A stretch of 64,000 nucleotides of DNA. Origin: Cycas panzhihuaensis (lineage: Eukaryota > Plantae > Cycadophyta). The stretch covers positions 187,929,741-187,993,740 of the forward strand of contig CM041465.1 of the NCBI GenBank assembly GCA_023213395.1. The letters run 5' to 3'. The notes under the pieces are model-generated. The model did no database searches. It worked only from the letters and a program-made list of their open reading frames with translations, and was not told where the DNA came from. The translations under genes and the position numbers were made by a program. This document shows, one piece after another, positions 4,684 through 56,700 of this stretch; position 1 is the stretch's first letter, and each line of letters begins with the position of its first letter.

Positions 4684-5395
4684 TGTTGACTTAAAATTTG
4701 CTCCCTATTGAGAGTTATCCACTTGTCAAGGTTTCCAATGTAGTCTAGGGTGTGTGCACATGGTCAACATTCATATTATTCATCATTTATGCCACATAAG
4801 TCCACAACTCATTCATACACACAACAATCACCATGCATTCCCTTTTGAGTACACATGTAATCCACGTAACTCTATAATATTATTAAATAATAGTCACTGT
4901 CTTTACATCATATCTTTGCCCATACACTACTCGCTGGTCATCTGTACCAAACTAGACCCAAAAGGATTAGTTAACTTGGCTCTCACATCCATCCCAATGG
5001 ACGGATGTGCTTATATACATTATGCGCCCTTACTGAGGAACGATTGTGACTAAATTCATAACCATCCGCTTTTCTTAATGGACACCCTTTCACTAATTAA
5101 TTCATTCTGCTGCTTGATTAATTGTTCATTCGTTCGTACAGTTTGGTCCACGTTTCTTTTCTTTGCTCAATTCGTTCTGTGAATGTTCCTGATGTGTTCC
5201 TGGCTGTGCAACGTGCATTCCTTCACTGTGCAGTGTGTTCTTGTGACGGAATGGTCCTATTTTTTGGCTGCTTTTCGTCTGCCCTTCTTCCAGAATGCAT
5301 TTTGAATGGTTGCCATGCAATTATCCACTATTTCAACCAGATTTCATCATACATTTCCCTTCACGGACGCACAGGTATCAATTTCATTTGCAACA
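4684..5395 (-). mobile_element. Solo LTR related to the gypsy A LTR
   Basis: TGTTGAC...GCAACA flanked by perfect TSD ATGGC (4679-4683 / 5396-5400). Reverse-complement similarity to 17004-17719. Confidence 0.9.
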
Positions 5396-20460: not shown

Positions 20461-21314
20461 CATGGTGGAGGTGGTCCTAGATGATGCATCTAGTATAATG
20501 ATAGCCATCAGAGAGACATCCTGAACATTTGATGAAGCCAATCTATATCACACAACAGAGGAGAATGCAAATATGAATAATTCCCAAGAATTCGAGCCAA
20601 ACTTGTATGGAGAATTGCCATAAGAAACATCATCAGATGAACAAGGTACAATGAATATGATCAAATATTGGATGAACAATTCATATAAGGCACAACCCTT
20701 CTCATATCGTTGTAATGTGCTATTCATATGTTCCTCATTTGACAATGAATCAAACAATAAATTAGATTATATGGGTCCTAATTGTAATAATGAATCTTTA
20801 AGCAATGAATGTTTAGTAAAAGTAGAATTTAAAGTAGATAGAAAAATACATGTAAAGCTCCTAGCTTTTAATTCTCCCCCCTATCCCAATCCTTATCCCT
20901 ATCCCCTTCCCAACTTCATATTCCCCAAAGTCAATCCGAGAGATCTGGCCAATCTTTCTTCCAAAGGAAAATCCCACTCCTACCCCTACCTTGGGTCAAA
21001 AAACCAAGATAGAAATTCCTGTCCTTACCTCAACCCCCCTATCAACTCCCCAAATTCCCTCTCAGGCAACCCACCAAGCGAAAATGAGATAAAGGGAAAT
21101 CTCAAAGAACTAAATACAATACTACCCTAAATAGACCCAGAGGAATCTCATCCAACAACCCTTATACCACAAGATAAAATAGACCTGCAAAAGAACATGC
21201 CCATATTCCTAGATGACAAAATGGAAGGTGCATGAGCCATTTGATTCATTACATGGAGCATTGGTTACAATTTAAGGTTTTGAATACAACTCAATGGGTT
21301 TTTGACTTTGTGTT

Positions 21315-26513: not shown

Positions 26514-27059
26514 GTGTTTACCTTATGGGACCAAGCATGGTGGTGGTACCTAGCCCACCACCATATCCTTAGAACATGGAATGAACTACAGTATGCATTT
26601 CGACTAAAGATTCGATCCACCCCAAAGCATACCAATCTCAAGGTTCCTAGTAAGAGAATTCCCCAATCGACACCTTATCAAATGTAAGCGTGTGTAGAAA
26701 CATTGGAGCATTCCCAAATCTCACTGGAATCATTTGTTTATTCATATATTAGGCACACTAGCGAAGTAATGGTTCCTAAAACAGGAACGGGTTAGGGCTA
26801 TATCCTGGGACCAACTAGAACATTTGTTTGTGAAAGCATTCTCTTATTCTTCAAATAATAAAGTGATACATAAAGTATTAAGAAACATAAGGGATATGTG
26901 TATAGAAGTAGAAAAGAATTTCATGTCAATTGGAAACATTATGGATACAAAAAGTAATGAGAATGAGGAGGAGGGGAAGGAGAAGGAAGTTCTCAACTTT
27001 CCTCCAGAATACACAGAGTTAAAATATGAACAACAGGATATAGAAGAAACTCTTGCACA

Positions 27060-29880
27060 TAAATTAAGAGAAAAGAATTAGATACAACAAGAAGAACCAA
27101 GAACAACCCAAATCAATCTCGGTATCCAAACTGAACCCAAAAACATTACCGTTGGAGATTACTGGGTCGAGAAAACGTTGGTAGAAGCATAAGCCCTCTT
27201 TGAGGAGTACAAGGATGTATTTGCGTGGTCATATAAAGACCTCAAGGGCATTCCACCAAAAATTGGAATGCATCACATTGATCTAATTGAAGGAGAAAAA
27301 CCAGTAAAGCAAAGACCCTACAGAATGAATCCTCATTACAAAGAAAAAGTCAAGGTAGAATTGGGCAAAATGCTCAAAGTAGGCTATATTTATGAGATAG
27401 AATACAATGATTGGGTAAGCCCAATAGTAGTAGTACTGAAGAAAAATGGGAAAATTCAAGTCTGCGTAGATTATCAACAACTCAATAAAGTCACTAAAAA
27501 GGATCCATTCCCCATCCCTTTCACAGAAGACATACTAGAAACAATGGGTGGGAAGGAAATTTACTCCTTTACAGATGGATTCAACGGATATAACCAAGTG
27601 AGTCTTGCATTGGAAGACTGGCCCAAGAGAACTTTCATAATCTAATGGGGTACTTATGCTTATCGAGTAATGCCTTTTGGACTTACGAATGCACTGGCAA
27701 TATTTCAGAGGATAGTACTCAATATTTTCAAAAAATTAGTGGAAGAAACTGTTGCAATATTTCTTGACGACTGGACATTATATGGGATAATGAAAAACCA
27801 TATAGAGAATCTGAGAACAATGCTACAAACATGTTGAGAGAATAAATTGTGTTTAAGTCTAGAAAAATGTACTTTCCTAGTACTCTTCAGGAACCTCTTA
27901 AGACATGTGATTAACAAAGAAGGATTAATCATGTAGCCAACAAAAGTAGCTACTATCTTACATTACCCCCCAACCCCAAAATAGAAAACAAATCAAAGGA
28001 TTTTTGGGATTAACAGGTTATTATCGCAAGTTCGTAAAAGGGTATGTACAAATATTTGGACCTTTGGAGTATTTGTTGAAAAAGGAAATAGATTGACGAT
28101 GGGGGCCAGAATGTCAAAGAGCATTTGAAACTTTAAAATAGGCAATAGCTTTAGCACCTATACTATGTTTTCCAAATTGAAACAAAATATTCCATATGCA
28201 TGTCGATGCCTCCTAGTTTGCCATTGGTTGTGCTCTAGCTCAGTCGGGGCAGAATAATGTGGATTGACCTATTTACTTTGCAATTTGGAAGTTAACCAAG
28301 GCAAAACAGAATTACATGACCACAGAAAGAGAAGGGTTAGGAATGGTGTATGCCTTACAAAAGTTTCGACACTATCTCTTATTGAATCCCTTCATATTTT
28401 ATGTGAATCATCAAGCATTAGTGTACCTAGTCAACAAACCACTGTTAAAAGGTTGTATTAATCAATCACTAGTGTTATTTCAAGAGTTTACTTTCTAGAT
28501 TGTGGTAAAACCAAGGAAAGCCCATATTATCCTAGACCAACTCTCTCGAATCCACAATGGTGAAAAAACCATAGGGGTACTTGACGACTTGCCGAATACA
28601 ACACTCTTCAATATTGAAGCAGTCCATGTTGAATGGTACCAAGATATCATGGAGTTCCTAATCACATGACAATGTCCTCCAAAGTTGGACAAAGCCCAAA
28701 AAAGGAACATAATAAGAAAAGTAGAACCTTACCAGTTGATCGGAGAAGAGCTATATTGACTTGGACCGAGCGACGTTTTACGACAATGTATTCGATTGCA
28801 TGAGGTAGAACAAATAATATCCCAAGCTGACGAGGGTATATTGGGAGGACATACAGGCGTGAAAAACACTTAAAGGAAGATACTGGCAACCAGATTCTGG
28901 TGTCCAACTCTCTTTGAGGATGTGAAGGATTGGGTAAAGAAATGTGGTTATTGTCAAAGGGTTGGAAAACTAAAACCTACAGACTTCGACCCTTCAAACA
29001 CAATCTTTCCTCTAGCACCATTTGAAAAATGAGGTTTAGACTTTATTAGACCAATTAAACCGACAGCACGAAGAACACAAACTAGATACATTCTGGTTGC
29101 CACAGATTATGCAAGCAAGTGGGTAGAAGCCAGGCCTTACGCAAAGCTGACACACCTAATATTGCTTAATTCTTATATGAAGTTATTACAACGAGGTTTG
29201 GATGTCCCATTGAATTAATTAGTGACCAAGGGGCCCACTTCTTAAATGAAATAGTCAATGAACTAACATAAACTTTTTTGATCTCCCATCATAAATTGAC
29301 ACCCTATTAACCTCGAGCAAATGGACAAGTAGAAAGTTCCAATATGATTCTAGAAAACTGTTTACGGAAAATATGTGATGTTGGAAGATCTGATTGGGCA
29401 GAAAAGCTATGCTCAGTGTTATGGGCATTCTGCACAACTTACAAATAGGCAACAGGGCAAATATAATTCAAACTAGTCTATGGGACTGAAGCCACATTGC
29501 CATTAAGTTTCAAATTCCAAGCTTGAGAATAGCATTGGCCTACCAATTGGACGATACAGAGTCTTTAAGAGAATGTTTATGGCAATTAATCCAGCTTGAT
29601 GAAGATTGACACAAAACAAAATGGTTACAAGAGGTAGAAAAAACAAGACAGAAGGTATGGCACGACCGCCATTTAAGAGCTTCATAATTTAGAGAAGGAG
29701 ATTAGGTTTTATTATATGATAGTAAATTCCGCACTCATCCAGGGAAGTTGAAACTTTCATGACTAGGACCATATTGAGTTGAACATATCTACTCCAATGG
29801 ATCAGTGCAATTAGAAGAGATAAATGGATATACGCTGCCTATGTTAGTCAATGGCAGTAGATTGAAGCTCTATCACCATT
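27060..29880 (+). pseudogene. Gypsy A pol: RT, RNase H, integrase ending in a GPY-type motif, no chromodomain
   Basis: HHIDLIEGEKPVKQRPYRMNP, VCVDYQQLNKVTKKDPFP, FTDGFNGYNQ, FLDDW, TTEREGLGMVYALQKFRHYLL, ATDYASKWVEA, LGPY. Confidence 0.92.
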
Positions 29881-30109
29881 AGAGCATTATTCCAGTAGGA
29901 ATCAACTGGATGTATATTACGAGTTGATTGAAGTTGCAGACAACAAAAGTTGTCCTAGTACCAGAACTAGGAATCTACACCGATGCATAAATAGCAAAAA
30001 AATTACAAAAAAGAAAAAAAAGAAAAAATTAATTGTAACTCACAAAATCATATACTTAAGCAGAGTCTTGGACAGAATACCACATAAATCGGACAATTAT
30101 TTCATAAAA

Positions 30110-30430
30110 CTGCACTATACGTTCCAAGTTTAGAACAAAAGCAGAACAGATTGGTGAAAAAGAGCTTGACAGATCAAGATACGTTCTCGATACAGAATGA
30201 GAATAGAACGGATCAACTAAAAAAGGGGACTCAACATATTAAAGGTTACATTCCAAATCTAGAATGGAAGGAAATACGAGTGAAGACATAAAAGTACAAG
30301 ATACGTTCCAAAAAGGGAATGCGAATGGGATAGACCAAAAGGAGAGGATAAAACAACCAAAATCCTGCGACCATTCCACTAGAAGAACACATGCAAACGG
30401 ATAGAGGTTACATCCTAGACCTGGTATGGT
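30110..30430 (+). repeat. Degenerate ~60-bp array in the 3' non-coding region of gypsy A (core TACGTTCC-N5-7-GAAY)
   Basis: Cores at ~30117, 30178, 30246, 30300, 30369 and 30408. Confidence 0.55.
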
Positions 30431-30616
30431 ATCAGAAAGCAACGAGTGCCACAGAAAGAAAGCAGCAAGCAAGCATTCCATCCTCCATTCGAGAGAGTGA
30501 ACACACGCCTATGCTCGACATCCAAAACAATGAACGAACTAGGGTTATAAATACTTTGTATTTATTTTCAATATTAAATTTCAATTGCCTACGTTCCCTC
30601 CCTTTTCTGACCATAG

Positions 30617-31695
30617 GATGAAGATTGTAGGGATTTAAGAGACCTATCTGCCAAAACTCCAAGTAGAGATTGAGGAATTACCAATGTCCTTCCAAGATGA
30701 GATCAGACAAGCAAGATGGGGAGATTTTATTCTAATGCCTCCATTATACCGTGATTTTGAGCTTATGGAGTAGATTATAGTGGCTTTAAAAGTAAACATA
30801 GGGAAGCTTGAGGTGAGTTTAGAAGCTATTCATTTTGTGACAAGATTATTAAAAGAAGGGGAAGTTCCGACAGCCACAAAAAGGTCTGAGGTGGATTGGG
30901 AAATTTGGACACGAGAGCTATGTAATCCCAATACCCAAGTTTACTCTAGAGGAATTAAAATTGTGGATATCAGGGATAGCTAGTTACGATGGGCAGTGAA
31001 AATTATTGGGACCAAATTTTTGTTAAAACAAAAACACACTTATATTTCAGGAGGTATGATGCCCATACTATCATCATTGCGTGATGGGGTTTAGATGAAT
31101 GGTGTGAATTCCTCGCAAATAGTATAGAACAATAGTTTGGGGAATTACAAACTCACCCCTTTTGACAACCATCACTATTATTGGCCCCTCCTATTTTAGC
31201 AATGCCTAGATGCTAAGTCCCCATCCTTGCCTATCTGACTAGGGGAACCCACAATTAAAAAATGGATAAACACTATGCCTACTACTGCTCAAGATCCAAC
31301 AGTAAAAGGACAGTAAAAGCAGAAATGACCAAAATCTTGAGGTGGATTCAGCACAAACTAGGGGCTCCTTTTCCTCTACGACAAAACAAGTGACTAAGAA
31401 GGGCATCAAGCAAGGTAGGGAGCAACAAAAGGAAGAAATTATATGCAAATAATGGAAGATGGAGCCTCCGCTTACATCAGTGACTGAACCTGGAAAAGGT
31501 TCTTCTGAACAACCATTTAGGGAAAAAGGGAAACATATTATCCGGCTTCTAGTGGAATTCGAGCAAGGCTACAAAGCAGAGATCGCAGATCTACATGAAA
31601 AAATGAAAGAAAGGGATGCTATTATAGCTACATTGACCCAAATCAATGAAGAATTACTTCGAGCCAATGAGCCACTAGGGGAACTGGAACTATAG
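30617..31695 (+). pseudogene. Extra 3' ORF of gypsy A, disrupted
   Basis: LEVSLEAIHFVTRLLKEGEVPT...WTRELC...LRWAVKIIGTKFLLKQK...THPF*QPSLLL, ending in coiled-coil-like LHEKMKERDAIIATLTQINEEL. Confidence 0.78.
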
Positions 31696-32527
31696 GAGCA
31701 GTCCTAATTCAAGGAGGGAGGAGGAAGAAGAATGATTTTTTTTTTGAAAAGGATGCTTAACCATTTTTGTTGACCTCGGATAGATGTTACAATCGAAATT
31801 AACACTTGTGCGCCCGAAGGGAGGAACGTATGGTTAATTGTGATTTAATGTAGCTAATAAGTGTAGGACAATAGTTCGACAAGCGTTTGGGATGAAGAAT
31901 GGACGAGAAAATAGTGAACAAGCAAGCAGAACATTGTGTGTTCTGTCATAGGAATGCACTACACAAATAGAACGCATGCAACACAGTCTGGGAACGCACA
32001 AGGAATGATTGCGGAAAGGATAGGGCAGAAAGGAACCACGTGGATCAGAACCGTATGGACGCACGTGTGGACTAACCAACAACAAAACGGATTAACCCAG
32101 GGTTTGTTATGAAGAGGTGTGCATTAAGGAAAAGGGACATTTGTGACTCCTAGTCACAACTGTTCTCCAATAAGGATGCACAACCTATTTAAACATGATC
32201 AATCAAGGGGATTAATGTGAGAGCCGAGTAAAGTGATCCATTGGGCCCAATTTGGCACGAATAACCAGCCCAACATTGTATGGAAAAGAATGAGATGATG
32301 TAAACATTGACTATTGCTTAATGAAATTACACAGTTACATGGAATTTATGTGTATGAATGTAATGAGGAATGCATGATATTCTATCGTGTTTTATGATTA
32401 TATTGTGAACTTATGAGGCATAATTTAGTACATGAATGTGTATGTTGACTGCGAGCACACCCTAGACTATAGTGGAAACCTTGATAAGTGAATCTCTTAG
32501 TAGGACATATATAAAGTCAACACCATC

Positions 32528-35900: not shown

Positions 35901-36954
35901 TGATGGCCTTTTTGGTGGCTTCCTTGCCTTTGAAGGTTGCTTTGGTGGCATTGGAAGGTCCCTTGGCTATCAAATGCTTAGTTATAGCTTGCCATCACGA
36001 TGACAACCAGGGTTCTTTGGTCATTGGACATAATATGTATGGCGAAACTTTGGACCAGTCCCTCAATGGACTTGGGCAACGAAACCAATGTTGACTCCTA
36101 CTTTCGCCTTATGAAAGTATGCTTGTCAAAGGTGTCATTATCTGGTAGTCTAGTTAAGGTTTGGTCAACATAGCAATGTCATCATGGATCACATATATGG
36201 CATACTACTAATCATCATCATATTGTATATTTCCACATAACTTGCTATTTCATTAAGAAATATCACTGTCAAATGTCTTTTACATCACTGTGGGGAATGT
36301 TCCACATGCATTCCAACATAATATTACCTACATAAACTCGGCTTTGACACCTTTGAGACCATAATATAGACTCACTGACTCAACTCTCACCATTAAAATG
36401 GTGAATGAATGACAATAAATACACTATGCGTGCCTCTTGAGGAATGGTTGAGACTTTTGGACCCAATCATACCTTTTTATGATAAATAACACCTTTTCAC
36501 TTAATATACATTAATTATGCCTCTTAACACATTTTGTTTGCCTGTATCACTGTACAAACATATCACTAAGGATGGCATCAACATCTTTGGAATGCACCAC
36601 TTCAATTTGGGCGTGCATTCCATGCGCTCCTCACTATGTGTTTTTCATATGTTCTAAATTGTGTTGCATTCCATTCCGAAATACAACCTACTATGGGTTC
36701 CCTAAGAGCTCTATTTTGGCCTTTTCCACTATTTTCTGGCATGTATTACACTATACGTCCATCTGTTGATGCGTTCATGCATTCCTTAAGTTAGGATAAG
36801 CATGCATTCCTATGTTTCTATTGTCCAAAATCACCCAGGTACTAGATTTTACCCCAACAATAACCTTAGTGATATAATTAATAAATTCTTCTATTGTCAT
36901 CTCGTGAAAGTTTACGTTGAGTCGAATGAGACGTCTCACAGTTTCAACAATTTT

Positions 36955-37663: not shown

Positions 37664-40059
37664 CAATCTAGGGATATGGCCTATATTTAGTTGGGTGTTC
37701 TATTAAAGAGCATCTTCTCTTCATCTATTGTCATTTGGCAGAATGAAGTTTTTACACTCCATCTTTGTTATGGCTATAGTGCTATCCTCACAATGATGTT
37801 GCTTGGTGGTTCAATGATATTTATAATGTTTTGGAGTTGTTTTTGCTCACACTAGGATGGTTTCTTTGTCATTTATTTGGTCATACACCTCCTCCAAACA
37901 AACCACTATAAATACCTTTCGCACCACCAAAACAATTGAATATATATATGTGTGTGTGTATGCACGTGTGTATGTATATAAGAATAACTACTACCACCAC
38001 CTTAAGGATGTCATTGTTGCCTTCTGTGAAGTCATTATGGCCTTCTAAATATTTTGGCATCTCATATGTATATGCAAATGACTATCTAACATTGTGTTAA
38101 CACGATCATTTGCCTTTCAATAGAGCCTAACTTGTATCAGAGATGCCTAACACACCTTTGCTTTGCCATATCATGCAAAAATGAGGCTTAATTGTTTCCG
38201 AATGGGCCCAATCCATGTTGCTAATAGTCTATCAACTTTTTTGTGAGCCCAACATACTGTAACGAGCTTATACGAGTCAGATACTATTGAAATTTAATGC
38301 CAAATGGGTTATGGTGCCTTCACCACTACCTAATGATGTCATTCACAATTTGAAAATGTTGGCAATCAGTCTTTCATGCCTAATACAAAGTTTAAATGTT
38401 ATTCACACCTCATAACGATCGCTACTCCATTATTGCCTTTCTCATGACATCGTTGTCAACCTTATATGAGTTCAATGTCTCCAACAAATATATTTGTAGC
38501 TTCAACTGAGTGTAATCATTTTTAGATTGTCCACACATGCCTATCTTCCATCCAACACTGTAGAAACATAATTGGACCCGTCTAAAATCTTCCATACCTT
38601 CTTATAACGTCCAACAATGAGCAAACATCGTGAACAAACGAAAAACATGCCTTGAACGACTCATTTTTCTCCATTTTTATGACTGTATTACATCATTTTG
38701 TTCTCCTAGCAGTTAGAAAGAATCAACATCACCACTTCAAGGCTCTCATTCGCATTACCAAATAGCCTTTGATTCGATTTGGCTCTGTACTTGCTATGCC
38801 TTAACTGCACACCTCCATGGGCTCTGATACCATGTGAAGAAACATAGACATATATCGACAGGATCTTGGTCATGCACAACAAACACTCAGAGAACAATAC
38901 AGAGGTATTTGTGTGGGAAATCCTTATGGGAGAAAACCCATAGTTGAACTTAGGATAGCTTTATTATATTAAACATAGCTTGGTCTTGTGACTTGTTAGG
39001 ATCATTCGACCGTAGGGGTTAGGCCTATTAGGGCCTAATGCACCTTGGTACACTTGTACATTAATTTGTATCCATTGATTCCTATTCGATATCCACTAAC
39101 TTGTATGGGGTTGATATTTATAATACTCCAAGAATTACGTCCAACCAATGGCTGTAACTCTTTGTCATGTCCTATGACCTTTTGTCATGTCTCGTGATTC
39201 TTCATCATATCCCGTTGAATCCTCAATACTTGTCTCTTCGTATCTCTTCACTAAACCACGAGTCATTAGCCTGACACAAAGTTAGCCTCAATTGAGTTCA
39301 CTAACAATGGGCATGCAAAAAGCACCAAAAAATAGAGCAAAAATCACGTGGAATGACATACAAGACCTGTGCCACTGACATGCACAGAGATTCAACAAAA
39401 AATTTGAACTAAAAATACTAAAAAAAAACCAATTTGTTTTGTCGCATGTCTGTCACCATCGACTTCTATAGGGAATATTCAATGGAATATTTCAAATTGA
39501 AAACTTTGGATATGATTTATCTTTCACTTTTCTAATATTAAGTGAAATTAAATCACATTCTATAAAATTTGAAGTTTGATTTTGAAGCCCCCTTCATTTC
39601 AACCCTTGGTCATGTGGAGCACAGGTTGCCAGGTCAGTTTTTGAGCATTCCAGAGGCCATTTTGGCATGTGAATATACCATGGAGCCCCCTTTTTTGAGA
39701 TCTTTTGGTAGTGGTCACATGTTGATGTTATATGTTTTTTTAGAAAATTGAAATTTATGTGTTTTTTAGCTAATTCCAGCTTCTTACAAGTAGTCTGAGG
39801 AAATAAAAATAGCTATGCCAGCTAGTTGCATGTAGATTGAAGTATCTTACAGTTTTCACCCTTTATTTCTGTGTTGCTTTAGTCGTTTTTCTAGTTAATT
39901 TTATGTGTGATTAGTCAAAATAGCTAGTGGAAGAGGTATAATGGGTTTTGTTACAGAAAAATTGATTGGTCTTTATGTGTGGGGAATAAGTCATAAAAAG
40001 AATTGAAAGAAATTTGAAGAAAAATAGTGTATAACTTTAGTTTTGGTTGTAATTTAAAC

Positions 40060-40370: not shown

Positions 40371-42460
40371 AACTGTGATTAAATTGTAATTAAAAGGCTT
40401 ATTTCCATGTGAACATAATGTAATGGTTAAAGTTAGTTGGAATGACTAAGGTTGTTGATGTCACAGACAATATCATACTTGTATAAGTTCGATTAATGCA
40501 ATAGGGGAAGCAGGTAATAGTTTGGGACTTTTCTTCCTGTATTCTTGATTATATGGCTTGAGCTGCAACTTGTACAAATTTGGTTGTACTATTCAACCTA
40601 TGTCTGGTTGTGAGAGGACTAGACGTAGGGCCCTTATTTGCAATAAAGATTAGGTTTGCATTCCTATCGACTTAACTTGTGCCTGCCTATCGAAGTAATG
40701 CACATAAATTGATGTGAGGTATGTAGAAGCACACATTGGTTCCATTGCCGATTGAATCTAGGGAAAAGATATAAATATGGTGAAAGCTGAGTAGACAGTT
40801 GGTTTCGCTTCCATGCCACCAAGGGTTAGGGCTGAGAAGAGACCTAAGATGTGCCAAGAACGTGGAGAGTGTTGGGCAAAGGATAGAATCTAGGTGGGAG
40901 TCTAGAAACCCAGATTTTCAATTACACCAAAGAAACAGGTGAAGAGGCGACCACCTATAAAATCAACAAAGTAAAAAAAGCTGATTGTGGAAGAAGAAAT
41001 CAAAAAAGAGGATGAGGGTGACAAAGGAACAGTCAGAAGTCTTGCCCAAGAATTGGCAGCTTAGACAGAAGAAGAAGACTAAATGTGTGCATTGGAAGAG
41101 GATTGTTTCAAGGAAATTCACTTACAAGAAAGCGTGGCTGAAGAAAAGGAACCTATAGGAGTAATAATAACACCAAATGATGAAAGTAATTCCATAAATT
41201 TAGAATTGTACAGTACAACTAGCACAGGGTGGGACAATTATTTGATCGAAATAGGAACTCCCCTCACTCATATACTCATCCCTCTCTTTGATAGAATGAG
41301 TAGAAGGCTCATCGGGGTGATTACATCAACAATTGATCTGCTAGTACTAGAAGCAAGCCTTGAGCAGGCAAGAAGTATGACAGGAGAGGGTGACAATTTG
41401 CCAATTCGAGGAGGCATGAGTGCAAGAGGAGGAAGTCCATTGGAGAATCCCTCCTTGTTGATGAATGCAGGAGGAGGTGGCAATCAACCACCACCATGAG
41501 GGCTACCTTGAGGAACTGCATTAGGGGGAATAGGACAAGGGGGTCCTAATTTGATAAGCAGTATACCACCAATAGTCCCATATGGTATTGTGCAAAATGA
41601 TGCAGTATTTACAAGTTTGTAGTTTGATGGGTCTACGAATCTAGTGGATCACTTGACATTGTTTAGAAACATGTTGCAAATCAAACGAATTCGAGACCTT
41701 GATGAGATAAAAGCTAGATTTTTCTCAACACTACGAGGAGCAACGATTTCCTGGTTTCTATATGCTTCGCCATAGAACCCATCATGGGATCAACTTAAAG
41801 TATATTTCTTGGATTGCTTTCAAAAATTGAGGGACCCAATGGTGATTTTACAAGCTCTGGAGGAAATAACACAATTTTTAGGGGAGTCAGTGAATGATTT
41901 TGATGGTCAAATGAGGATCATCATGAACAAAATGGACGCATTGGCACCCATTAATTTGATGCTGGCAATGAAGTATTTTGTTCAAGGATTAACGCCATAG
42001 TTGCGATATAAAGTTATGCTTCATCCAATGCATAACTATGAGTAGGTTCAGGAATTAGCTCTAAAATTTGAGAATCAAATGAAGACTACGTATTCCCAGT
42101 GAATGATGCATGCGAATTCGGTCTTGAGAAAGATATTGCCTTTATCTAGACATCGCCATTAAGTGTGAATGTATAGCCATTCACGATGAATGGGCAGTAA
42201 ACAATATAGGCTCCACAAATGGGAACAAATCCAGAATTGGAAGCTTTAAGGAGGGAGGAGGAAACACTGAAACAACAACCACTTGTGTTTGTACCAACAA
42301 ATATGTAGCATAATCAAGAAATTAAAAAACTGCAACAAGAAGTGGCCCAACTACGCCTGGAGAAATCTAGAGAAAATATTTAGTGCCCCCCACCTTGCAA
42401 CCAACAAGGACAGTTAAAGAATGAGCATTTAGGATCGATAAAATGGTGTGAGAATTGTAG

Positions 42461-45500: not shown

Positions 45501-48500
45501 CATCTTGAACTTTCCAATGCCTGAGACAGTTAAGCAATTAAAAGGGTTCTTGGGAATGACAGGTTATTATAGGAAGTTTATCACAGAATATGTCAAGATA
45601 GCAAATCCCCTTGAAATGTTGTTAAAGAAAAGACTAACGTGGCAATGGAATTTATAGCAGCAGTTAGCATTTGGTTTGTTGAAAAGAAAAGTAGTAGAGG
45701 CACTGGTCCTAAGATTTCTTGACTGGAATAAACCATTCCATGTACATGTGGATTCATCTCTCTTTGTGATAGGGTGCATGTTAACTCAGCCCAAAGATGG
45801 CAATATAGACTTTCCAACTATTTTGCCAGTTGAAAGTTGACACAGGTAGAGCAAAATTATTCAATAATAGAAAGAGAGGGCCTTTAAATGGTGTATGCAT
45901 TACAAAAATTTAGACATTATTTATTAGCTAATCCGTTTGTATTCTTTGTGGATCATCAGGCCTTGCAATATTTGATTAACAAACCAATCTTACAAGGAAG
46001 GATTAACAGGTGGGTGACGCTGTTTCAAGAATTAAATTTTAAAATCATTGTCAAGAAGGGGGAGAAACATACATTGCCCAATCAACTATCTAGAAATGTA
46101 AATGTAGAGGCTGCCACTAGAATTCAAGATGATTTTCCTGATACAAGATTGTTTTCAGTGGAAGTAGTACCAAAATGGTACGAGGGCATTGTGCAATATG
46201 TGTCAACAATGCGTACACCAATTGGGTTGGAATGAGTGGAACAACAAAGTTTTATTAGAAAGATATTTCCATTCCAATTGATCCAAGGTATGTTGTATAA
46301 GCTTGGGCCTGATGGAGTTCTCATACAATGTATATTAAAACATGAAGTAGAAGCAGTGGTATGGGAAGCTCATGAGGGAGTTGTAGAAAAGTACCAAAGC
46401 ACGGAGCCAATTGCTAGAAAGATCTTGCTAGTAGGATTATGGTGGGCCATGCGATTTGAAGATGTGGAAAAATGGGTCAAGGCTTGTGATATTTGCCAAA
46501 GAGTTGGTAAACTAGGTAAACTTCACTTCATGCCTTTACATCTGATTTTAGCCCAAGGCCCATTCAAGAAGTGGAGATTAGATTTCATAGGACCAATTAG
46601 CCCACCGACAAAGAGGACAAATGCCAAGGATATTCTTGTTGCCATTGATTTCCTCACTAAGTGAATGGAAGCAAAGCCTATGAAGACATTTGATGCTCAT
46701 AGCATTGCACATTTTCTGTACGAAATGATAATTGTTTGTTTTGGATGCCCACTTGAAATCGTATTCGATTAGGATAATAGTTTTCTAAACCATACAATTC
46801 AACACCTTACTATGGAATTCTTGATCCAGCATAGGAAGTCTTTGTTGTACTACCCTAGGGCCAATGGTCAGGTAGAAAGTACAAATAAAATCTTAAAGTT
46901 GGCCATGACAAAGATCTGTAGTGAAGGTAGGACGGATTGGGTAGAACGACTACATTCAATTTTATGGGCAGATAGAACGATAGTAAAGCGACCCCACAAG
47001 TAGACACCATTTCAATTGGTGTATGGATTAGAAGCGACCGTTCCTTTGGAATTCCAAGCAAAAAGTCTGCGAATAATAGTCCAGTTGTGGATGGAAGAAA
47101 GGGATTTAAGAGAATAGCGACTCATAAAACTTACGAAACTAGACGAATGACAAGCTAGAGCATTGTGGGAAATCAGGATGGAAAAGAACCATTGCAAAGC
47201 CTGGCATGACAAATATTTGAGAATGGCTCAATTCCAAGTTGGTGATTTAGTACTACTGCATGATAGTAAGTTTTGAGTTAAATTAAGGAAGATGAAGTTC
47301 AAATGGTTAGGTCCATATAGGGTGGACCAAATTGGACAAAATGGAGTTGTTTGACTCATACAGCTTGACGGATCCCTCATGGCTAAACCTATAAATGATA
47401 GTCGATTCAAGCCATATAGGTGTTGAAAAAAAAAACAAAGAATGCAAATCAGATGGGCATACTTGCTCTCTCATGGTGATGATGTAGTTGGCGAGGTTAT
47501 AATCTAGTGAAGTGTCGAAGCTGGAAACTCATCAATGGAATCCTCCTAACAATTGGTAACTGAAAATGGATGGTTGGATTGTTCATGATAAGATATTATT
47601 AAAAGCATATAATGATCGTGATATGTGATTAAGGAGTGTGACATGTGAAAGACTATCATAGTCATGAGTTAGTAAGCATGATTGACAGTGCGAAAAGTAC
47701 TAAAGGTTGTCAATGTAAGAAACCTTCAATTAATGAAGATGAAATTCATTGATTATGTGAGAGAGACTCTATATATACAACGGTTGTTTGTAACTGTTCA
47801 TTGTTGGTACGACACTTGTTTAACACATGACCCTCATGATGTCCTAGATAAAACATTACCTTTAACACCCTCTCTTAATGTTTTATCTATTTTAAACCAA
47901 GCCTTTTTCTAAAGAATTGAAATTTATCCTTATTGGGAGGTTTTGTTAGGATATCTACAAGTTGTTCATTTGTTGTATAATGTAATTGGTCTATCTTCTT
48001 GTTTTATACTTTCTCCCGTATGAAGTGATGATGTACTTCAATATGCTTGGTTCGTGCATGGAAGACTGGATTCTTGGTCAATTTAATTGTACTCTGATTA
48101 TCACGGAACAATGTTGTTGACTCTTGTTGCTGTTGAGTTAAATCTGTTAGTAATTGTCTTAACCAAATTGCCTCACAGGATGCTGTTGACTACTGGGGTG
48201 TCTTATTACACTTACAAGATACCTCTGCTCACTTGTCAAGGTTACACAGTGCTATAGTCTAGTTCGTGGTAATCACAACATGGTCATTCACATACATTCC
48301 ACATATATTTCATGAATGGTACATGTATACGTAAATCAATGCATACTCAGCAATTCATCATCACAACACAAAGAATACACCACTTTCCATGTAACTCTTC
48401 CTTTTATTAAGTAATCAAGTCAATTTACACAGAGGCTGGAATGTATTCATGAGCATTCCAGTAGCATACAATCTTTCTGTTACACATGCGTACCCAGATG

Positions 48501-49464
48501 GTACTTATCATACAGTGCTGCTCCAATTGGCTGACATATGTGCTGACTTCCGCACCTTTGCGTACCCGTGATAATTGGCTCTCACCCTAACCTGGTGGTT
48601 CATGCGTACCTCCTTAAGTACTCATGTTGGTACCTTTTGGATGAAGGGTTATGACCGTCATAACTGCATTCTTCATCATACGTACCTTTCTATTAATCAC
48701 TTGTTTAGGCACTTAATTAATAAACCTTTGTGTCCATATATCCGTACGTACGTCTGGCAGCTCAACATGTCTTCACTGGTTCCTTTGAGTCATGCGTACT
48801 GCTTCCGCTCGGTTCCATTCCGCCGTTAGTAATGTATCATCATACGCACTGCCTGTACATACCGCCATAATGCACCTGAATGCCGATTTCTTTGCCGTTT
48901 TGCCTCGTGCGTACCTCTGTATGGTCCGTACCTACACAACTCAGGTTATCTGACCTACCTCTGGTCCTTTCGCAGCCATAGGATCATTTTAGACTCAACA
49001 TCTATCCCGGGTCAACAGTTATGGGTTTGAGCATCCTTGCTCAACAAAACTCCAAAAAATTTCAAAATTTCGGGGTATTCCTCCCCTGCTCGGTCTCAAG
49101 GCGGCTCCTGCTGCCTCTGTCCTCCCAAAATTTCCTCATTTATCTGTTAGGGTGGCAATAATAGCATCCTTCTCTTTTATTTTGTCCTTCTGGCACCCTG
49201 TTGTCCTCATGCTGGTTGCGGAGTCCCAGAGATAATAAAGAAAACCTAAGCGTACAAATCGGAACCCTACGTACGTGCCTCTGAGGAACGCTTGCCGTTT
49301 TTGTGTCTTTGCGTACTGCGATGCGTACCAGAGCAAGTTCTTTGCGTGTTGTGCCGTATGGATGTTTGGCGAATTTTCCGGAGTCCGTTCCGCTCTGCGT
49401 ACTGCATGGGAATGCTCGTAGGTACGTAATGATTTGTCGTTTTGCGGAATTTTGTCTTATACGT

Positions 49465-49870
49465 GCCTGTGGTACGTATAGTGTTAAGAGTCTCCATTAT
49501 GCGTACTCGATTACGTACGTTTTTGATACATAAAATGTAACTAAGCACTTGAGTGTATTTTACACAGTGCGTACCCGACTACGTACTTTTTTGGTACGTA
49601 TAATGTAGTCGTTTAACTTAATTCTCTTTGCACTGTGCATACCTGCTATGTACTTTTCGTGCACGTATAATGTATTTGAGCTACTTAAAATTTGTTTACC
49701 CGTGTGTACCGATGTACTTTCGTGCACGTATAGTGTAATTTCGAGTCACTTTTTTGAACTGTGCGTACTTCAGTGTATTTCCGTGGTACGTATGGTGTAT
49801 GTTTTCATTTTGATCACTTTTTTAACTGTACGTACCTGGTAACATACCATTTTGGTACGTATACTGTATT
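49465..49870. repeat. GTAC-rich ~60-68-bp tandem array (6-7 units) in the 3' non-coding region of B
   Basis: Conserved block GTGCGTACC..TACGTACTTT..GGTACGTATA.TGTA at ~49499, 49567, 49635, 49702, 49761 and 49828. Confidence 0.85.
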
Positions 49871-50160
49871 TTGCTTGTATGCCTTGGATTTTTCCTCTGA
49901 TTTTTTCAATTGCTGATGCTATTACTTATGTCTGTGATGAGTTACAGTTATTTTTTATTTTTTCCAATTTTTTTTTTCTCTTTTTGTATCCATACCGAAC
50001 TGGATCATGGCTCGGTATCAAGGCATTTGATTGTGCCTCAATGTCATGCAATACGATATGGTACAACCGGTGATCCTACCGGGTAAGTTGCTCCACCCTA
50101 GTTGATATAGGGTTTCAGTTTACTACCCTTGACCAGTAGCTGGCCTGATAGTTTCTTCAA

Positions 50161-51522
50161 CTAGATAGTGCCATTCTGGTACACCTTCTCAATCAGATAT
50201 GGGCCTTGCCAATGCATCTTCAATTCTCCTTGGGTTGTTTGGGATTTGTTGTTGAACCGCCATACTCGATCACCCTTCTTGAAATACGATGTCTTGTCGT
50301 GGCGGTCGTGCCTTGTTCTTTTTCGCCTTTTCCTTGGTGTGGTATGCTTTGTCAATTTCTTCTTATGATCCCTTAATTGATCTTCTCCTAACCAATGTTC
50401 TCTACAATGTCTGAAATGGGAAATTCCATATAGTGGTTTTCCATAAAAGGGTTTCATATAATCTCCAACGTATTCTCCATGATTTTTGTCTTCTGGAATG
50501 GCAACTTTATTTCCTAGATCGGAATCTCTAGGGATACTCTCGGCAGTTTCCTTTTCTTTGTCCTCAAATTTGGCGCCGATGGTTGAAAAAGATCTTTCGC
50601 TGGGTAGGTGTACCTCTAAAGAAGATGAGGAAGGTTTGTTACTTCCTTCCTCGGGCTGGGATGGGGGTGGGGAAGGGCAATCTACCTCAAGACCCACACT
50701 GGAGGCAGAGGGAAGGTTAGGGTTAGAGGGGGTTGAGGTATTAGGAGGTGAATTAGGGTAAGGGTTTGGGTTAAAAGGGGGATTTGGGTTTGGGTCTAGG
50801 TTTTTAATGTTATTATTAACACTCGTATAATCAACAAATTCAGATTTAATATCAACTTCCTCAGTTACATTCCGAGAAAGTAGGTTACACTTATAGGATG
50901 AGGGGTTGACTTCATATGCGTCCCGTAGCCAATAATCCACAAATCTCATCTCGTTTTCATTGTCTGAAGAATTGTAGATTTCTCCAAAATAAGTCGGTTC
51001 TACTTTTTGGCGGTCGATTAATTTGGTAGGTTCTTCGGTCGTATGGTAGAGATTTTCTTCGCCGAACGAAGAAGTTGTTGCTTCACTCGCAATGGTTGTA
51101 CTTGAACCATCGTTAGGTATCACTTCAATGGAATTCTTTCCCAACATCGGTAATACTACTTCATTCCCTTCATCTGACAAGGTGAAGGTTACGTCTTTCC
51201 AACTTTGGAGACATTGGGTTTTGTATAGCCATGGTCTCCCCAATAAGGCCGGATAGGGAGTTGCACCTTTCTCCGTTTCCACAATCGTAAAATCGATCTT
51301 TACGACAATTCCTGCCACATCCACCTTGATGTCGGCCAATCTCCCCATAGGTCGTACCAGTAATTCGTTGGCCAATTTCAACGAATAGGTTGCCGCTTCC
51401 AACTTTGGGCTTCCCAGTTTACGCCATGTCGAAGCTGGTAACACGTTTACCGCTGCGCCTCCATCAACGATTACCCGTGGGAATGTTTCTCCCAAGACTG
51501 TCATGGTTACCATCGGATCCAT
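50161..51522 (-). CDS. Gypsy B protease (DGG) + Pro/Asn/Ser linker + integrase C-terminal GPY motif, in one 453-aa frame
   Basis: VIVDGGAAVNVLP...LLGRPWL...PNPNP...FKKGDRVW...HWQGPYLIEKVYQNGTI. Confidence 0.85.
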   Translation of the reverse strand: MDPMVTMTVLGETFPRVIVDGGAAVNVLPASTWRKLGSPKLEAATYSLKLANELLVRPMGRLADIKVDVAGIVVKIDFTIVETEKGATPYPALLGRPWLYKTQCLQSWKDVTFTLSDEGNEVVLPMLGKNSIEVIPNDGSSTTIASEATTSSFGEENLYHTTEEPTKLIDRQKVEPTYFGEIYNSSDNENEMRFVDYWLRDAYEVNPSSYKCNLLSRNVTEEVDIKSEFVDYTSVNNNIKNLDPNPNPPFNPNPYPNSPPNTSTPSNPNLPSASSVGLEVDCPSPPPSQPEEGSNKPSSSSLEVHLPSERSFSTIGAKFEDKEKETAESIPRDSDLGNKVAIPEDKNHGEYVGDYMKPFYGKPLYGISHFRHCREHWLGEDQLRDHKKKLTKHTTPRKRRKRTRHDRHDKTSYFKKGDRVWRFNNKSQTTQGELKMHWQGPYLIEKVYQNGTI

Positions 51523-51567
51523 ATCAAATGATGGTATGATTTGCTTTAGACTCTTGGTGATTCCCCG

Positions 51568-53730
51568 CTATAACACTCCTCCTTTGATCGAATCGATAAC
51601 TTGGCATAGAGGAATAGTCAACTGTAGCTGTTTTACCAAATTTTTCATTAATAGCAACATTCTGGGAATATCCTCAGCTGACAATCCTTTAAAAAGCTCC
51701 TCCATTTGCACCATTTGGGGCTTCATCTTAGGTTCTTCCGGTAGATTTTCTTGTTCCTTCTGTTTGTTCTTCCGTACATAGACGTATTTGGTTTCTGGTT
51801 TACCCATTGGTAATGCATTCTCCTCCCCGACTAGGCCATCTAATACTTGTTTTGCCTTTCTGTATCGATCCATTTCTGTCGGTGGATCTAGATATCCTTC
51901 ATCCAGTTTCTCCTTTTGTTTATTTTGTAGTTTGACGTTTTTTGCTTCCGGTATGATTGTCATTAGGTTGGTCGCTTTGGCTTTCCCTTTGCAATCTTCT
52001 GTTTTGTGGTCACTTGGGCCACAGTTACTACATACGAACGGCTTCTGTTCGTATTCACCTTCATTGGGCATTCGACTTCCGATTGCCCAAAGCTGGCAAA
52101 CAGATGAGGCATCTACCCATTGGCGGTTTTTTCCTCGAGGGTTCTGGTGCACCCCTTGTTGTATAAACATTAGGGTGGGTTGCCTCCCTTCCCCTACCTC
52201 GTCCTCTGAAGGCTTTTCCCACAGGATTGTAGAAACAATCCTTAGTTGTATCGTACCAACGTCGCATATATGGCACCATCTCTCTTGTTGGTGCAATGCA
52301 TTATTTTTTAAATTCAAGTCACATTCCTTGGTGGTATGTGAATTTTCTTCACAAATGTGGCACCATTTGGTTACTCTTCCCACATGGTCCTTCTTTTTTA
52401 GTGTTTCTTCTTCTTCTTCTCGGTTATTTCTAATTTTCAATCTGGCCACCTCTTTTCTTAATGCTTCCAATTCCGATTCCTCTTCTGCTACCCCTACCTG
52501 GCAGAAGGGTCGGTTGTACTGATTTTGTTTCAATTCTCTAATCTCATCTTGTAATCTCAGCAGCAGGGAGTCTTGTCCTCCTGCCTGCGCGTCCATTTCC
52601 ATTTCAAAATCTAATGCTAGATCTTGAGCATTCTTAAACGATTTCAGTGGATGAGCATGCATCATGGCTCGCAATTTCTCGTTCAACCCTCTTACAAAGT
52701 AGTTTTTTATATTGTGATCTGTTATCGTCTCGTTAATCATGCTAGCGGCAATGATTTTCATTCTGCTAATGTAGGTTAGGATGGATTCTCTCGGTCTTTG
52801 TCTGATTTCTCTTAACGCAATTTCCATTGCTTCATTACTGCGAAACTTTTGAAATCTTTCTTCGAATGCTTTCTTAAGCTTTACCCATGGCTCATTCTTA
52901 TTTGTTTCCTTGTACCATGCCAAGGGTACTCCTCTCAATGTACAGGTGAATCATGCTTTGATTTTGTCTTCGTTTGTAATCTTTTTTACACCAATAAGAC
53001 TCTGAAATAGATACACATGCTCTGCTGCGTCTGAAGTATCATTAAAAATCAGTTTCCCAAAGTCTCTATAGTCATCCATTTTGGGAGATTGCAACTGTCC
53101 CCCACCTGGTGGTGATTTTTCCTTTCTTCCCTCCTTCGGGGATGCACTGGGAGTGCCTACCGCTGTACTATCTTTCCCAAACAGCAGATTCTTGAATGGA
53201 GTTTTGATGTGTATGGGTTCCACTACACCTGGAACTTATATAGTCAATGGTGTCACTGTAATATACAATTGATCAGATCCCCTTTCTGTCAAATCTTCAA
53301 AAAGTTGTCTCGTTAGCTTATTCTCCCAATATGCCGAGGGACCTTTCTCCGCCTTCTTTTCACTATTACTTGGGTCCTTCGGGCTGTCCTCCACTGGTAT
53401 ACTTCCCTCTTTTAAGGTTTCTGGATGTTTTTCATCCACTTTTGGTTTCCCTTCAATCTCTGGGCTAAACAAATCATCTCTGATTGGGGCTGGTGTCAAT
53501 ACCATGCGTTCGCCATGAGTTTCCTCTTCCTGAGGTGTCTAGGCTCCACTTGCCTTAGATCCTTCAATGGACTGTCCCTTAGTCTCGCTGTTTTGCGAAC
53601 TTAACCTCCTCGCCCTTCTGAGTTTTGCTTCCTTCGACCATCTTAGTGCCCTTTGTCTGCTGGTCTCCTTTTCCTTGGGTGAAGTATCCTTCTGGGGCTC
53701 TTCCGACCTTGAAGGCCTCTTAGGTGGCAT
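51568..53730 (-). pseudogene. Gypsy B gag (few stops and frameshifts)
   Basis: MPPKRPSR start; EHVYLFQ...RGVPLAWYK...WVKLKKAFEERF...QRPRESILTY; four CCHC-type knuckles. Confidence 0.88.
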
Positions 53731-56700
53731 TGGAAGGTCCCTTGGGCGCGATGGCTTAGTTCTGACCCGCCATCACGACGGCAGCCAGGGTCCTCTGCCC
53801 TTTACACATTCTTTTCTTTGAAACCCCTAGGCCCTGTCCCTCCTCAACGGATGTAGGCAACGGATCCAATGTTGACTGCTGGGGTGTCTTATTACACTTA
53901 CAAGATACCTTTGCTCACTTGTCAAGGTTACACAGTGCTATAGTCTAGTTCAGGATACTGTCAACATGGTCATTCACATACATTCCACGTATATTTCACA
54001 GAATGGTACACGTATGCAATCAATGCATACTCAGCAATTCATCATCACAACACAAAGAATACACCACTTTCCACATAACTCTTCCTTTTATTAAGTAATC
54101 AAGTCAATTTACACAGAGGCTGGAATGCATTCCTGAGCATTCTAGCGACATCTGATCCTTCATTACACATGCGTGCCGGATGGTACTTATCATACGGTCT
54201 TTGCTCCAATTGGCTGACATATGTGCTGACTTCCGCACCTTTGCGTACCCGTGATAATCGGCTCTCACCCTAACCTGGTGGTTCATGCGTACCTCCTTAA
54301 GTACTCATGTTGGTACCTTTTGGCTGAAGGGTTATGACTGCCTGTCATAACCGTACCCCTTCAGTCATACGTACCTTTCCATTAATCACTTGTTTAGGCA
54401 CTTAATTAATTATCCTTTGTGTCCGTACGTCCGTACGTACGTCTGGCAACTCAACAAGTCTTCACTGGTCCCTTTGAGTCATGCGTCAGCTTCGATCAAT
54501 TCCATTCACGTTGATGCGTATCATCATACGTGCCGTTGCACGTGCACTGCCATACGAATGCCGCCAATTTTTTTGCCATTTTGCCTCGTGCGTACCTTTG
54601 TACGGTCCGTACCTGCACAACTCAGGTTATCTGACCTACCTCTGGTCCTCTCGCAGCCATAGGATCATTTTAGACTCCAACAGATGCACTGACTGCTGAC
54701 TTGTATTCTGCTTTGATAGAAGACAAGGCAATTGTTGGTTGTCGTTTACTGCTGTAGAATATTGCGGTTGACCCAAAGAAGAAACAATACCCACTGGTTG
54801 ACTTTCTTTTTTCTTTATCTTTTGCCTAGTCTGAATCACAGCACCCAATTAACATACTTGTCTCATTCTTTGGATATGTGAATTTTAAATCTGAAATCCC
54901 TTTCAGATATTTGAGTATCCTCTTTGTTGCCTTCCAATGTGCTAGTTTTGGATCTTGCATATACCTGGAGATTACTCCATCGGAGTATGAAATATCATGT
55001 CTGGTTGTAGTGAGATATATCAGACTTCCAACTAATTGTTTGTATAGAGTTGTATCGACTGAAGTATCTTTTGTAGATGGACTTAAGTCGCACTCAATTT
55101 CTATGGGGGTAGCACAACTATTACATTCTTCCATTTTGAATTTTAACAGAAGATCCTTGGTATACTTGATTTATGACAGAGTGATTGAATCTTTCTTTTG
55201 ATTAACTTCTATACTAAGGTAATAATTTAGAAGTCCTAAATTAGTCATCTCAAAACCTTTTTCTAATTGCACTTTTATATCTATGATGGACTCTATGTCA
55301 CTACCTGTGAGAATCATGTCAGTTACATCTACTACAATTATTGTGATTAGCTCTTGATTTTTCTTTACATACAGATTGGAATCTGATTAGCATCCGTGAA
55401 ACCCATTTTGAATGAGATACTTGTCCAATTTGGCATACCAAGCCCTTGGAGTTTGTTTTTGCCCATATAGGGCTTTTTTCAGCCTGCATACAAGATGTTT
55501 TTGTATGTTTTGAATATATCCTTCTGGTTGCCTCATATAAGCCTCTTCTTCAAGATACCCATTCAAAAAGGCACTTTTCACGTCCACTTGATAGACTTTC
55601 CAATTTTATTACGCAACAAAGGCTATTACCATCTTAACTGTATTTAGTTTGGCTACTCGAGAGAAGGTGTCATTATAGTCTACTCCAACAGTCTGAATGT
55701 AGCCCTTGGCCACCCATTTGGCCTTGTACTTTTCTATCTTGCCATCAGAATTTTCTTTTATTTTATAAAGCCACTTATAGGTGACAATAGGTTTGCCTAT
55801 AGGTGGTTCAACCATTTCTCAAGTTTTGTTTTTGGAGATAGATTCCATTTTTGTGTCCATTGCAGCTTGCCACTATGTATGCTAACTTACTTCTTCATAT
55901 GATTGTGGTTCAACAGAGCAGAATAGGGCTTGATGTTTTTGGGCCCTTGTTCTATGAGTGAATACGTCTCCTTTGGCTTCCTCAATGGTTTTGAGATACC
56001 ATTTGGGTATTTTTTTGGAGAATGGTCTCCTTTCTTCATCTTCCTCAAGACTTGAATCTCTAAAGGGCGAAGGTGCCCTTCCTAATTTTTCTTCTTCATC
56101 CGTTCCTATGTCTTTAGATGTGATTCTTGAAATATCTTTAGGTGGAAGAACTTCCACTGGAGACTCCTTTGCAGGCTCTTCAATTTCCTAATATGGTAAT
56201 GGGCTTGCAATAATGTCTTTTTCATTGAATATAACATCTCTAGTTACATAAATCGTATTTGTTTTGGGGTCTAAGCATCTATAGGCTTTTGAATTTTTGT
56301 TGTAGCCTATCATTATGCATTATATGCTTTTACAATCAAGTTTTGATCTTTCTTTATCTGGAATGTGTACAAAAGCTTGGCAACCAAAGATTTTAAAATT
56401 ACTTACATTTGGCTTGTATCTTGTCCATGCCTCTTTTGGAGTCATTTTGATTAAGGCTTGTGTTGGACTTCGATTTATAAGATGAACAATTGTGTTTACA
56501 GCTTTTGCCTAATAAGTTTTTGAGATTTGTTTGTCTTGAGTCATGTTTCGAGCCATTTCCATAATTGTCCTGTTCATCTGTTCTACCACGCCATTCGATT
56601 AAGGTGTATATGAAGTTGTGATTTGTCGACATATCCCATGAGTTCTGCAAAATGCCTAAAATTCTTTCGAGATGTACTTGCCTCCTCCATCTGATTTGAT

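Follow-up and report, generated by a model that had tools for sequence, protein, structure and literature searches.

Segments complementary to the primer tRNA-Glu(CUC) in the long terminal repeats of a Ty3/gypsy lineage of Cycas panzhihuaensis: a putative multipartite primer contact

The region analysed here, a 64,000-nucleotide stretch of Cycas panzhihuaensis DNA (contig CM041465.1, positions 187,929,741 to 187,993,740; hereafter the window, numbered from its first letter), is a nest of old plant long terminal repeat (LTR) retrotransposons, as indicated by self-comparison, reading of LTR ends and Pfam matches. One tRNA-Glu-primed Ty3/gypsy lineage is represented by three elements (A, B and D) together with a solo LTR, and the LTRs of this lineage carry a short box complementary to the anticodon arm of tRNA-Glu(CUC), which is the subject of this study. 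Elements A, B and D are of the Ty3/gypsy type by gag (PF03732, with a Ty3 capsid match) and the reverse transcriptase (RT)–RNase H domain, and the pol genes of the elements are split into short open reading frames. The strand of each element was fixed by the orientation of gag, the primer-binding site (PBS) and the target-site duplications.

Element B: 48184–54682, minus strand; target-site duplication GCATC; LTRs at 48184–49000 and 53870–54682, 88% identical.
Element A: 17004–32522, plus strand; target-site duplication CCATC; LTRs at 17004–17719 and 31785–32522, 85% identical.
Element D: 11184–36859, minus strand; LTRs at 11184–11880 and 36089–36859, 79% identical; element A is nested inside.
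Solo LTR: 4684–5395, minus strand; same lineage as A, B and D; target-site duplication GCCAT.

Five copies of the core of the box, GGCTCTCAC, are present in the window, where 0.26 would be expected; 0 of 100 shuffles reached five copies, and all five sites lie in LTRs of this one lineage (A, B, D and the solo LTR). Once mismatches are allowed, two decayed copies are added, in the 5' LTRs of A and of D. Positions in the tRNA are given in linear numbering for this box and for the second one described below.

Box, B 5' LTR: 54253–54270, minus strand; sense GGGTGAGAGCCGATTATC; 13-nt exact run against tRNA-Glu(CUC) 29–41, 17/18 overall.
Box, B 3' LTR: 48570–48587, minus strand; one CpG-type transition relative to the 5' copy; exact run of 11 nt.
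Box, A 3' LTR: 32217–32230, plus strand; GTGAGAGCCGAGTA; exact 14-nt complement of tRNA positions 26–39.
Decayed box, A 5' LTR: 17435–17448, plus strand; TATGAGAGCCTGGT; 8-nt exact run.
Box, D 3' LTR: 11490–11503, minus strand; sense GGTGAGAGCCAAGC; 10-nt exact run.
Decayed box, D 5' LTR: 36378–36391, minus strand; sense GGTGAGAGTTGAGT.
Box, solo LTR: 4974–4987, minus strand; sense TGTGAGAGCCAAGT; 31 nt after the TATATAAG motif at 5017–5010.

Taken over the copies, the box (13–18 nt) is the complement of tRNA positions 23–41, that is, of the 3' strand of the D-stem, the 5' strand of the anticodon stem and the anticodon loop. With A oriented on the plus strand and the other two elements and the solo LTR on the minus strand, the sense strand of every element carries the box antisense to tRNA-Glu. 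An earlier note on this DNA had described boxes in the 5' LTR of B, at 48570–48587, in the 3' LTR of A, at 4974–4986 in the solo LTR and at 11491–11503 in D, and had stated that each is antisense to the tRNA on the sense strand of its element; the sequences and coordinates were all found as described, and the antisense orientation was confirmed with the strands of gag, PBS and duplications.

The tRNA was identified with a pattern built from the window only (the box read in the sense of the tRNA, followed after 18–30 nt by the complement of the PBS), with which metagenome contigs were scanned. This yielded 120 stretches, most of the matches being 42 nt long. Of 25 loci tested with ARAGORN, 24 held a tRNA-Glu(ctc), and 86 such genes were recognized across all 120 loci (for example, L004:14626-14698:+). 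The retrieved tRNA-Glu(CUC) genes contain GATACTCGGCTCTCACCC and have the 3' end GGCAACGGAA, one tRNA holding both strings. The string given for this tRNA in the earlier note is correct for the plant-type tRNA-Glu(CUC), giving 17/18 for B and 14/14 for A, where the reference is these environmental plant-type genes and not the gene of the host. A printed plant tRNA-Glu sequence was not found in the literature, and ARAGORN detected no tRNA gene within the window. Some environmental tRNA-Glu(CUC) variants (L002, L007, L018, L029 and others) carry GATATTCGG or GATATTTGG in one strand of the anticodon stem and a change that compensates for it in the opposite strand; such variants in the host would shift the match counts by one. 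Only four non-Glu tRNAs were available from the loci as controls, the 'Lys(ctt)' among them being a mutated tRNA-Glu copy, and shuffles and strand controls were used instead.

The same tRNA is named by the PBS, as the earlier note had proposed. In A, B and D a TGG-led 13-mer (TGGTTTCGTTGCC or TGGATCCGTTGCC) lies two bases past the 5' LTR and agrees at 12 of 13 positions with the complement of the 3' end of tRNA-Glu including CCA. A second segment of the LTR, here termed the U5 box, lies 46–71 nt upstream of the LTR end and complements the 5' strand and D arm of the tRNA (positions 1–17 and, in B, after a small gap, up to 29).

PBS of A: 17721–17733, plus strand; TGGTTTCGTTGCC; 12/13.
PBS of B: 53856–53868, minus strand; TGGATCCGTTGCC; 12/13.
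PBS of D: 36075–36087, minus strand; TGGTTTCGTTGCC; 12/13.
U5 box, A 5' LTR: 17659–17673, plus strand; CTAGACTACAATGGA; 14/15 complementary to tRNA-Glu 1–15, the sole difference being a CpG-type transition; longest exact run 11 nt.
U5 box, B 5' LTR: 53941–53959, minus strand; AGTATCCT (tRNA 22–29) adjoining AACTAGACTA (tRNA 8–17).
U5 box, D 5' LTR: 36145–36155, minus strand; AACTAGACTAC (tRNA 7–17).
U5 box, solo LTR: 4734–4748, minus strand; CTAGACTACATTGGA; 10-nt exact run against tRNA 6–15.

Together, the PBS, the U5 box and the anticodon-arm box cover tRNA positions 64–76, 1–17 (29 in B) and 23–41, respectively, and leave out the T arm. A further element, G, which belongs to another LTR family, has the PBS TGGTTCCATTGCC within 40737–40812 (plus strand). 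About 30 nt past this PBS, GGTGAAAGCTGAGTA resembles the complement of the anticodon arm and is followed by a second PBS-like string, TGGTTTCGCTTCC; the leader of G may represent primer tRNA copied by read-through and since decayed, but the match is not significant, its alignment score having been reached by 37 of 500 shuffles.

Could a promoter-proximal motif match the tRNA by chance? On both strands of the whole window, 9-nt complements to tRNA-Glu occur at the expected level, which is compatible with such an origin and for which reason two 9-mers matching the D-loop, CTAACCAAC in the U3 region of A and TATCCTAAC in that of D, were dropped as evidence. Longer runs behave differently: nine of the 11 complementary runs of at least 10 nt in the window, both strands considered, fall in the two LTR box positions. 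Summed over the seven LTRs, runs of at least 8 nt amount to 193 in the antisense orientation, against 8 in the same sense and 33 for the reversed tRNA, and none of 500 dinucleotide shuffles (mean 23, maximum 106) reached the observed total. The exact 14-nt match is to the very tRNA that the PBS names, with an estimated expectation of about 2e-4 per LTR, and the independent U5 box adds a match of 14/15 to tRNA 1–15 with an 11-nt exact run. A chance match of the box to the tRNA is very unlikely, to the point of being negligible.

Alignment of all seven LTRs with MAFFT revealed at least eight conserved blocks in common, which refutes the claim of the earlier note that these LTR families are otherwise barely alignable. 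Between families, identity in the box window is 0.69–0.71, whereas the LTR as a whole averages 0.35. When 14-nt blocks that do not overlap are ordered by conservation, the box comes sixth, and the blocks above it include one that resembles a poly(A) signal, ACCTTGACAAGTG, AGTTAYGTGGAA and an arm of a palindrome that precedes the TATA-like box. Compared with neighbouring LTR positions, a comparison on which the earlier note had made its reading depend, the box stands clearly above its flanks, although it is not unique in this. Within elements, the 5' and 3' copies of the box differ at 3/14 positions in A, 1/18 in B and 4/14 in D, amounting to 8/46 (17%), which is similar to the LTR-wide divergence of 12–21%; CpG-type transitions account for several of these changes. 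To be conserved between families and yet decay neutrally after insertion is what one would anticipate of a cis element that is needed only in transposition.

These data also bear on an explanation by shared ancestry only, in which an ancestral LTR contained tRNA-derived pieces by chance, the families have diverged too little since and the box is functionless. All seven LTRs are indeed homologous, and the copies are old (79–88% identity within LTR pairs). On the other hand, most of U3 and the flanks of the box are unalignable between families while the box is kept, neutral decay is seen only after insertion, and conservation well above that of the neighbouring columns is already apparent in four families. 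We therefore regard shared ancestry as an unlikely explanation in itself.

The position of the box within the LTR is likewise constrained. In the 3' LTR of A a TATA-like box, TATTTAAA, lies at 32186–32193 (plus strand), 31 nt before the box, with its equivalent in the 5' LTR at 17405–17412. Counted from the first T of the TATA-like motif, GTGAGAG follows after 31–32 nt in the solo LTR and in elements A and D, and after 36 nt in B, in fair agreement with the approximately 25–35 nt, near the start of R, given in the earlier note. As this spacing is kept at 31–36 nt while the sequence of the spacer varies between families, the box is placed at the predicted U3/R border, 300–400 nt from the LTR end. 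Wherever transcription begins, the copy in the 3' LTR should be part of the transcript, since it is upstream of a conserved AATGAAA/AATAAA block, the likely poly(A) signal. Some 30–40 nt upstream of the TATA-like box, A, B, D and the solo LTR share an inverted repeat of the type GGTTATGAC..GTCATAACC (17357–17381, plus strand; 54337–54360, minus strand; and homologous LTR positions), which might serve as a palindrome bound by a factor or fold into a hairpin and one arm of which is among the best conserved blocks.

The same constraint would suit a box that is a conserved signal of the core promoter, of the transcription start site (TSS) and R start or of another cis function such as packaging, its match to the tRNA being the relic of a captured primer sequence that binds no tRNA in replication. 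A TSS-tied role is suggested by the fixed TATA spacing, LTR blocks without any tRNA match are as conserved as the box or better, and the leader of G may hold a decayed primer copy (p ~0.07). Against this, plant initiator signals comprise a few bases and not the 13–18 of the box, a neutral relic would not be expected at an identity of 0.7 where the LTR mean is 0.35, and the read-through fossils that are known immediately follow the PBS and keep its register, whereas the box is 300–400 nt before the LTR end. The separate U5 box, matching the same tRNA, also argues against a promoter signal or a relic. This explanation is possible but, in our view, doubtful.

Energy calculations, whose models ignore tRNA modifications and tertiary structure, are consistent with pairing between box and tRNA. 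Of the tRNA-Glu sites predicted within an LTR, the box ranks first in five of the seven LTRs (A 3', B 5', B 3', D 5' and the solo LTR), with predicted energies of -31 to -45 kcal/mol. In a shuffled-tRNA control, made for A 3' and B 5' only, the values of -40 and -45 kcal/mol compare with -29 and -32 kcal/mol for the shuffled tRNA (standard deviation of about 2.5). Co-folding of the tRNA with the actual 5' leader of each of B, D and A predicted intermolecular helices at the box and at the U5 box, with a gain of 16–26 kcal/mol.

Pairing of this kind might also serve the host, if the box were a target of silencing by small RNAs or tRNA halves derived from tRNA-Glu. The box offers an antisense match of 11–18 nt, and tRNA fragments target LTR retrotransposons via the PBS, according to a preprint (bioRxiv 10.64898/2026.01.22.698655). 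Yet a site that harms the element should disappear from active lineages and not persist in them, and the box reaches across the anticodon loop, which is the place of cleavage into tRNA halves, making a silencing target a decidedly improbable explanation.

Beyond the tRNA-complementary segments, several features of the elements are worth recording. The 4.9 kb internal part of B (49001–53869, minus strand) has Pfam matches only to gag and an aspartic protease, and since matches to RT and integrase are absent from it the element looks non-autonomous; its ends are intact and its 5-bp duplication is perfect. Although non-autonomous, B keeps all three tRNA-complementary sites (box, U5 box and PBS). 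Its plant lineage is very abundant; thousands of short contigs (of about 100–200 nt) from public runs match 48900–54760. As for further copies outside the window, neither a gag search nor a two-box DNA pattern gave a match in viral contigs, and a homologous-protein search with the gag of B returned one weak Logan match. Conserved among A, B and D is a stretch of about 40 nt upstream of the 3' LTR, AAGGATGCTYAACC...TTGTTGAC..GGATAGA (31745–31784, plus strand; 49001–49040 and 11881–11920, minus strand), which is not purine-rich and is thus an unusual polypurine-tract region. The 3' LTR of D contains a run of about 20 C with one G interruption (11386–11412) that does not occur in its 5' LTR. A copia element is nested in A at 21315–26513, and a PBS of the tRNA-iMet type, TGGTATCAGAGCC, at 38812–38832 (minus strand) adjoins, at 38833, the end of a copia-type LTR. 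A piece of a related LTR flanks the solo LTR (4364–4686), so that the solo LTR sits inside a copia LTR.

On balance, the box is, by a small margin, more likely than not to be a second, distal contact site for the primer tRNA-Glu(CUC) in a multipartite primer contact on the genomic RNA. Of the multi-site primer reading offered in the earlier note, what stands is the complementarity to the element's own primer, which is strand-specific, far beyond chance and conserved between families, and to which a second box in U5 can now be added; what falls is the argument from barely alignable LTRs, and tRNA bridging of the RNA ends, for strand transfer or dimerisation, is a proposal. Given where the box sits, at the acceptor border, a part in minus-strand transfer is an appealing possibility.

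Several observations weigh against a distal primer contact. Other blocks without a tRNA match are conserved equally or better, so that conservation alone does not single out the box, and because the four LTR families, all from one window, are homologous, they represent one evolutionary origin and not four independent ones. The tRNA used for comparison comes from environmental contigs and not from the host. Element G has a tRNA-Glu PBS with a different LTR that lacks the box. The presence of the 5' copy of the box in the RNA is read from the TATA spacing only, and the TATA-like motif of B is weak. Pairing requires the anticodon stem to open, and the predictions take no account of tRNA modifications. 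Finally, in Drosophila Gypsy the 3' site for the primer is dispensable for cDNA synthesis (PMC1635307).

If the box is indeed a distal contact for the primer, a sequence of events can be envisaged in which, aided by the nucleocapsid chaperone, unfolded tRNA-Glu would pair at the PBS, the U5 box and the box. The box would always be present in the 3' RNA copy, at the start of R, which is the acceptor in minus-strand transfer, and a copy at the 5' end is probable. A tRNA held at the 5' PBS could then dock onto the 3' box and draw the acceptor near, whereupon minus-strand strong-stop DNA would displace the tRNA from the 3' box, because the 3' end of this DNA would have the sequence of the tRNA anticodon arm. 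Such a scheme, in which tRNA-Glu is tiled on three sites, docks at the R-start box and is replaced there by strong-stop DNA through strand displacement, is put forward tentatively and is, as a whole, rather unlikely to be correct. A role of the box in primer selection or packaging, or in formation of the initiation complex at the 5' end, would be equally compatible with its features. We know of no retroelement for which a built-in hand-over from tRNA to strong-stop DNA has been described, and no report of such primer-tRNA boxes in the LTRs of plant elements was found in the literature.

The choice of primer and the transfer of strong-stop DNA in LTR retroelements are understood from a few yeast, fly and retroviral models. 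In the plant lineage described here the complementarity to the primer is unusually long and clear, and one of its sites lies exactly at the border of the acceptor for first-strand transfer. If these sites are functional, the tRNA-bridge idea developed for Ty3 and Gypsy would reach plants, with simple and testable sequence rules, and the annotation of U3/R/U5 boundaries and of primer usage in large plant genomes could be improved.

Three known kinds of tRNA-related sequence in LTR retroelements do not account for the box. The LTRs of Helenus and TRIMp3 contain tRNA-derived sequence, the tRNA-like part of Helenus being said to provide a Pol III promoter (Kojima, 2024; PMC10886601). The LTRs studied here share with them the presence of tRNA-related sequence, but, unlike Helenus, hold only antisense fragments of the tRNA; Rfam found no tRNA match in them even at E values up to 10. 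As no tRNA-like fold was recognized by Rfam and the pieces are antisense, these are not Helenus-type LTRs, a type also ruled out by the lack of an ARAGORN match and by the missing T arm. Half-tRNA priming, as in copia, Ty5, Bianca and Osser, is not applicable either, because the site adjoining the LTR matches the tRNA's 3' end, while the anticodon-arm box is 300–400 nt upstream, in the LTR. Nor is the box a fossil of primer read-through, since a fossil would follow the PBS in register, whereas R and U5 separate the box from the PBS; in the leader of each of A, B and D, the 13-nt PBS is the only part that matches the tRNA complement.

Precedents for primer contacts at several sites do exist in Ty3, Ty1, Drosophila Gypsy and HIV-1. 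In HIV-1 the A-rich loop contacts the anticodon loop of tRNA-Lys3 over about 4 nt, in U5 near the PBS and in a manner dependent on modified bases. The elements described here resemble HIV-1 in having a template segment upstream of the PBS that is complementary to the primer anticodon loop, but differ in that pairing would give a long duplex, situated where R begins. The boxes of Ty1 lie downstream of the PBS. These boxes, 0, 1 and 2.1, represent extended primer interactions (Friant et al., 1996, as cited in PMC5371799), and the arrangement of a short PBS with extra boxes for other tRNA arms is similar to ours. The U5 box, which complements tRNA 1–17 (29 in B) upstream of the PBS, is an extended PBS of the Ty1 type; the boxes of Ty1 are near the PBS in the 5' region and match tRNA-iMet, whereas the anticodon-arm box is 300–400 nt upstream, at the start of R.

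In Drosophila Gypsy, two binding sites for tRNA-Lys,2 have been described, and in vitro the tRNA can link the 5' RNA to the 3' RNA (Gabus et al., 2006; PMC1635307). In contrast to the Gypsy site, the box is longer (13–18 nt), covers the anticodon loop and is conserved across four LTR families. The closest parallel is found in Ty3, which has a 5'–3' bipartite PBS (reviewed in PMC5371799) and in which initiation or minus-strand transfer suffers when the distal site is lost, an effect not seen in Gypsy. As in Ty3, elements A, B and D are of the Ty3/gypsy type and combine a short, canonical 5' PBS for the tRNA's 3' end (12/13 in all three) with a second segment, complementary to another arm of the same tRNA, in RNA derived from the 3' LTR, where its presence follows from the logic of LTR transcripts. 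The primer of Ty3 is tRNA-iMet, and the 3' segments, in U3, pair with the T-psi-C and D arms; the plant elements would instead use tRNA-Glu(CUC), with a distal box for the anticodon arm at the U3/R border and a third box in U5. For Ty3, one tRNA can bridge the RNA ends (PMC5371799), and an equivalent bridge is proposed here from sequence alone.

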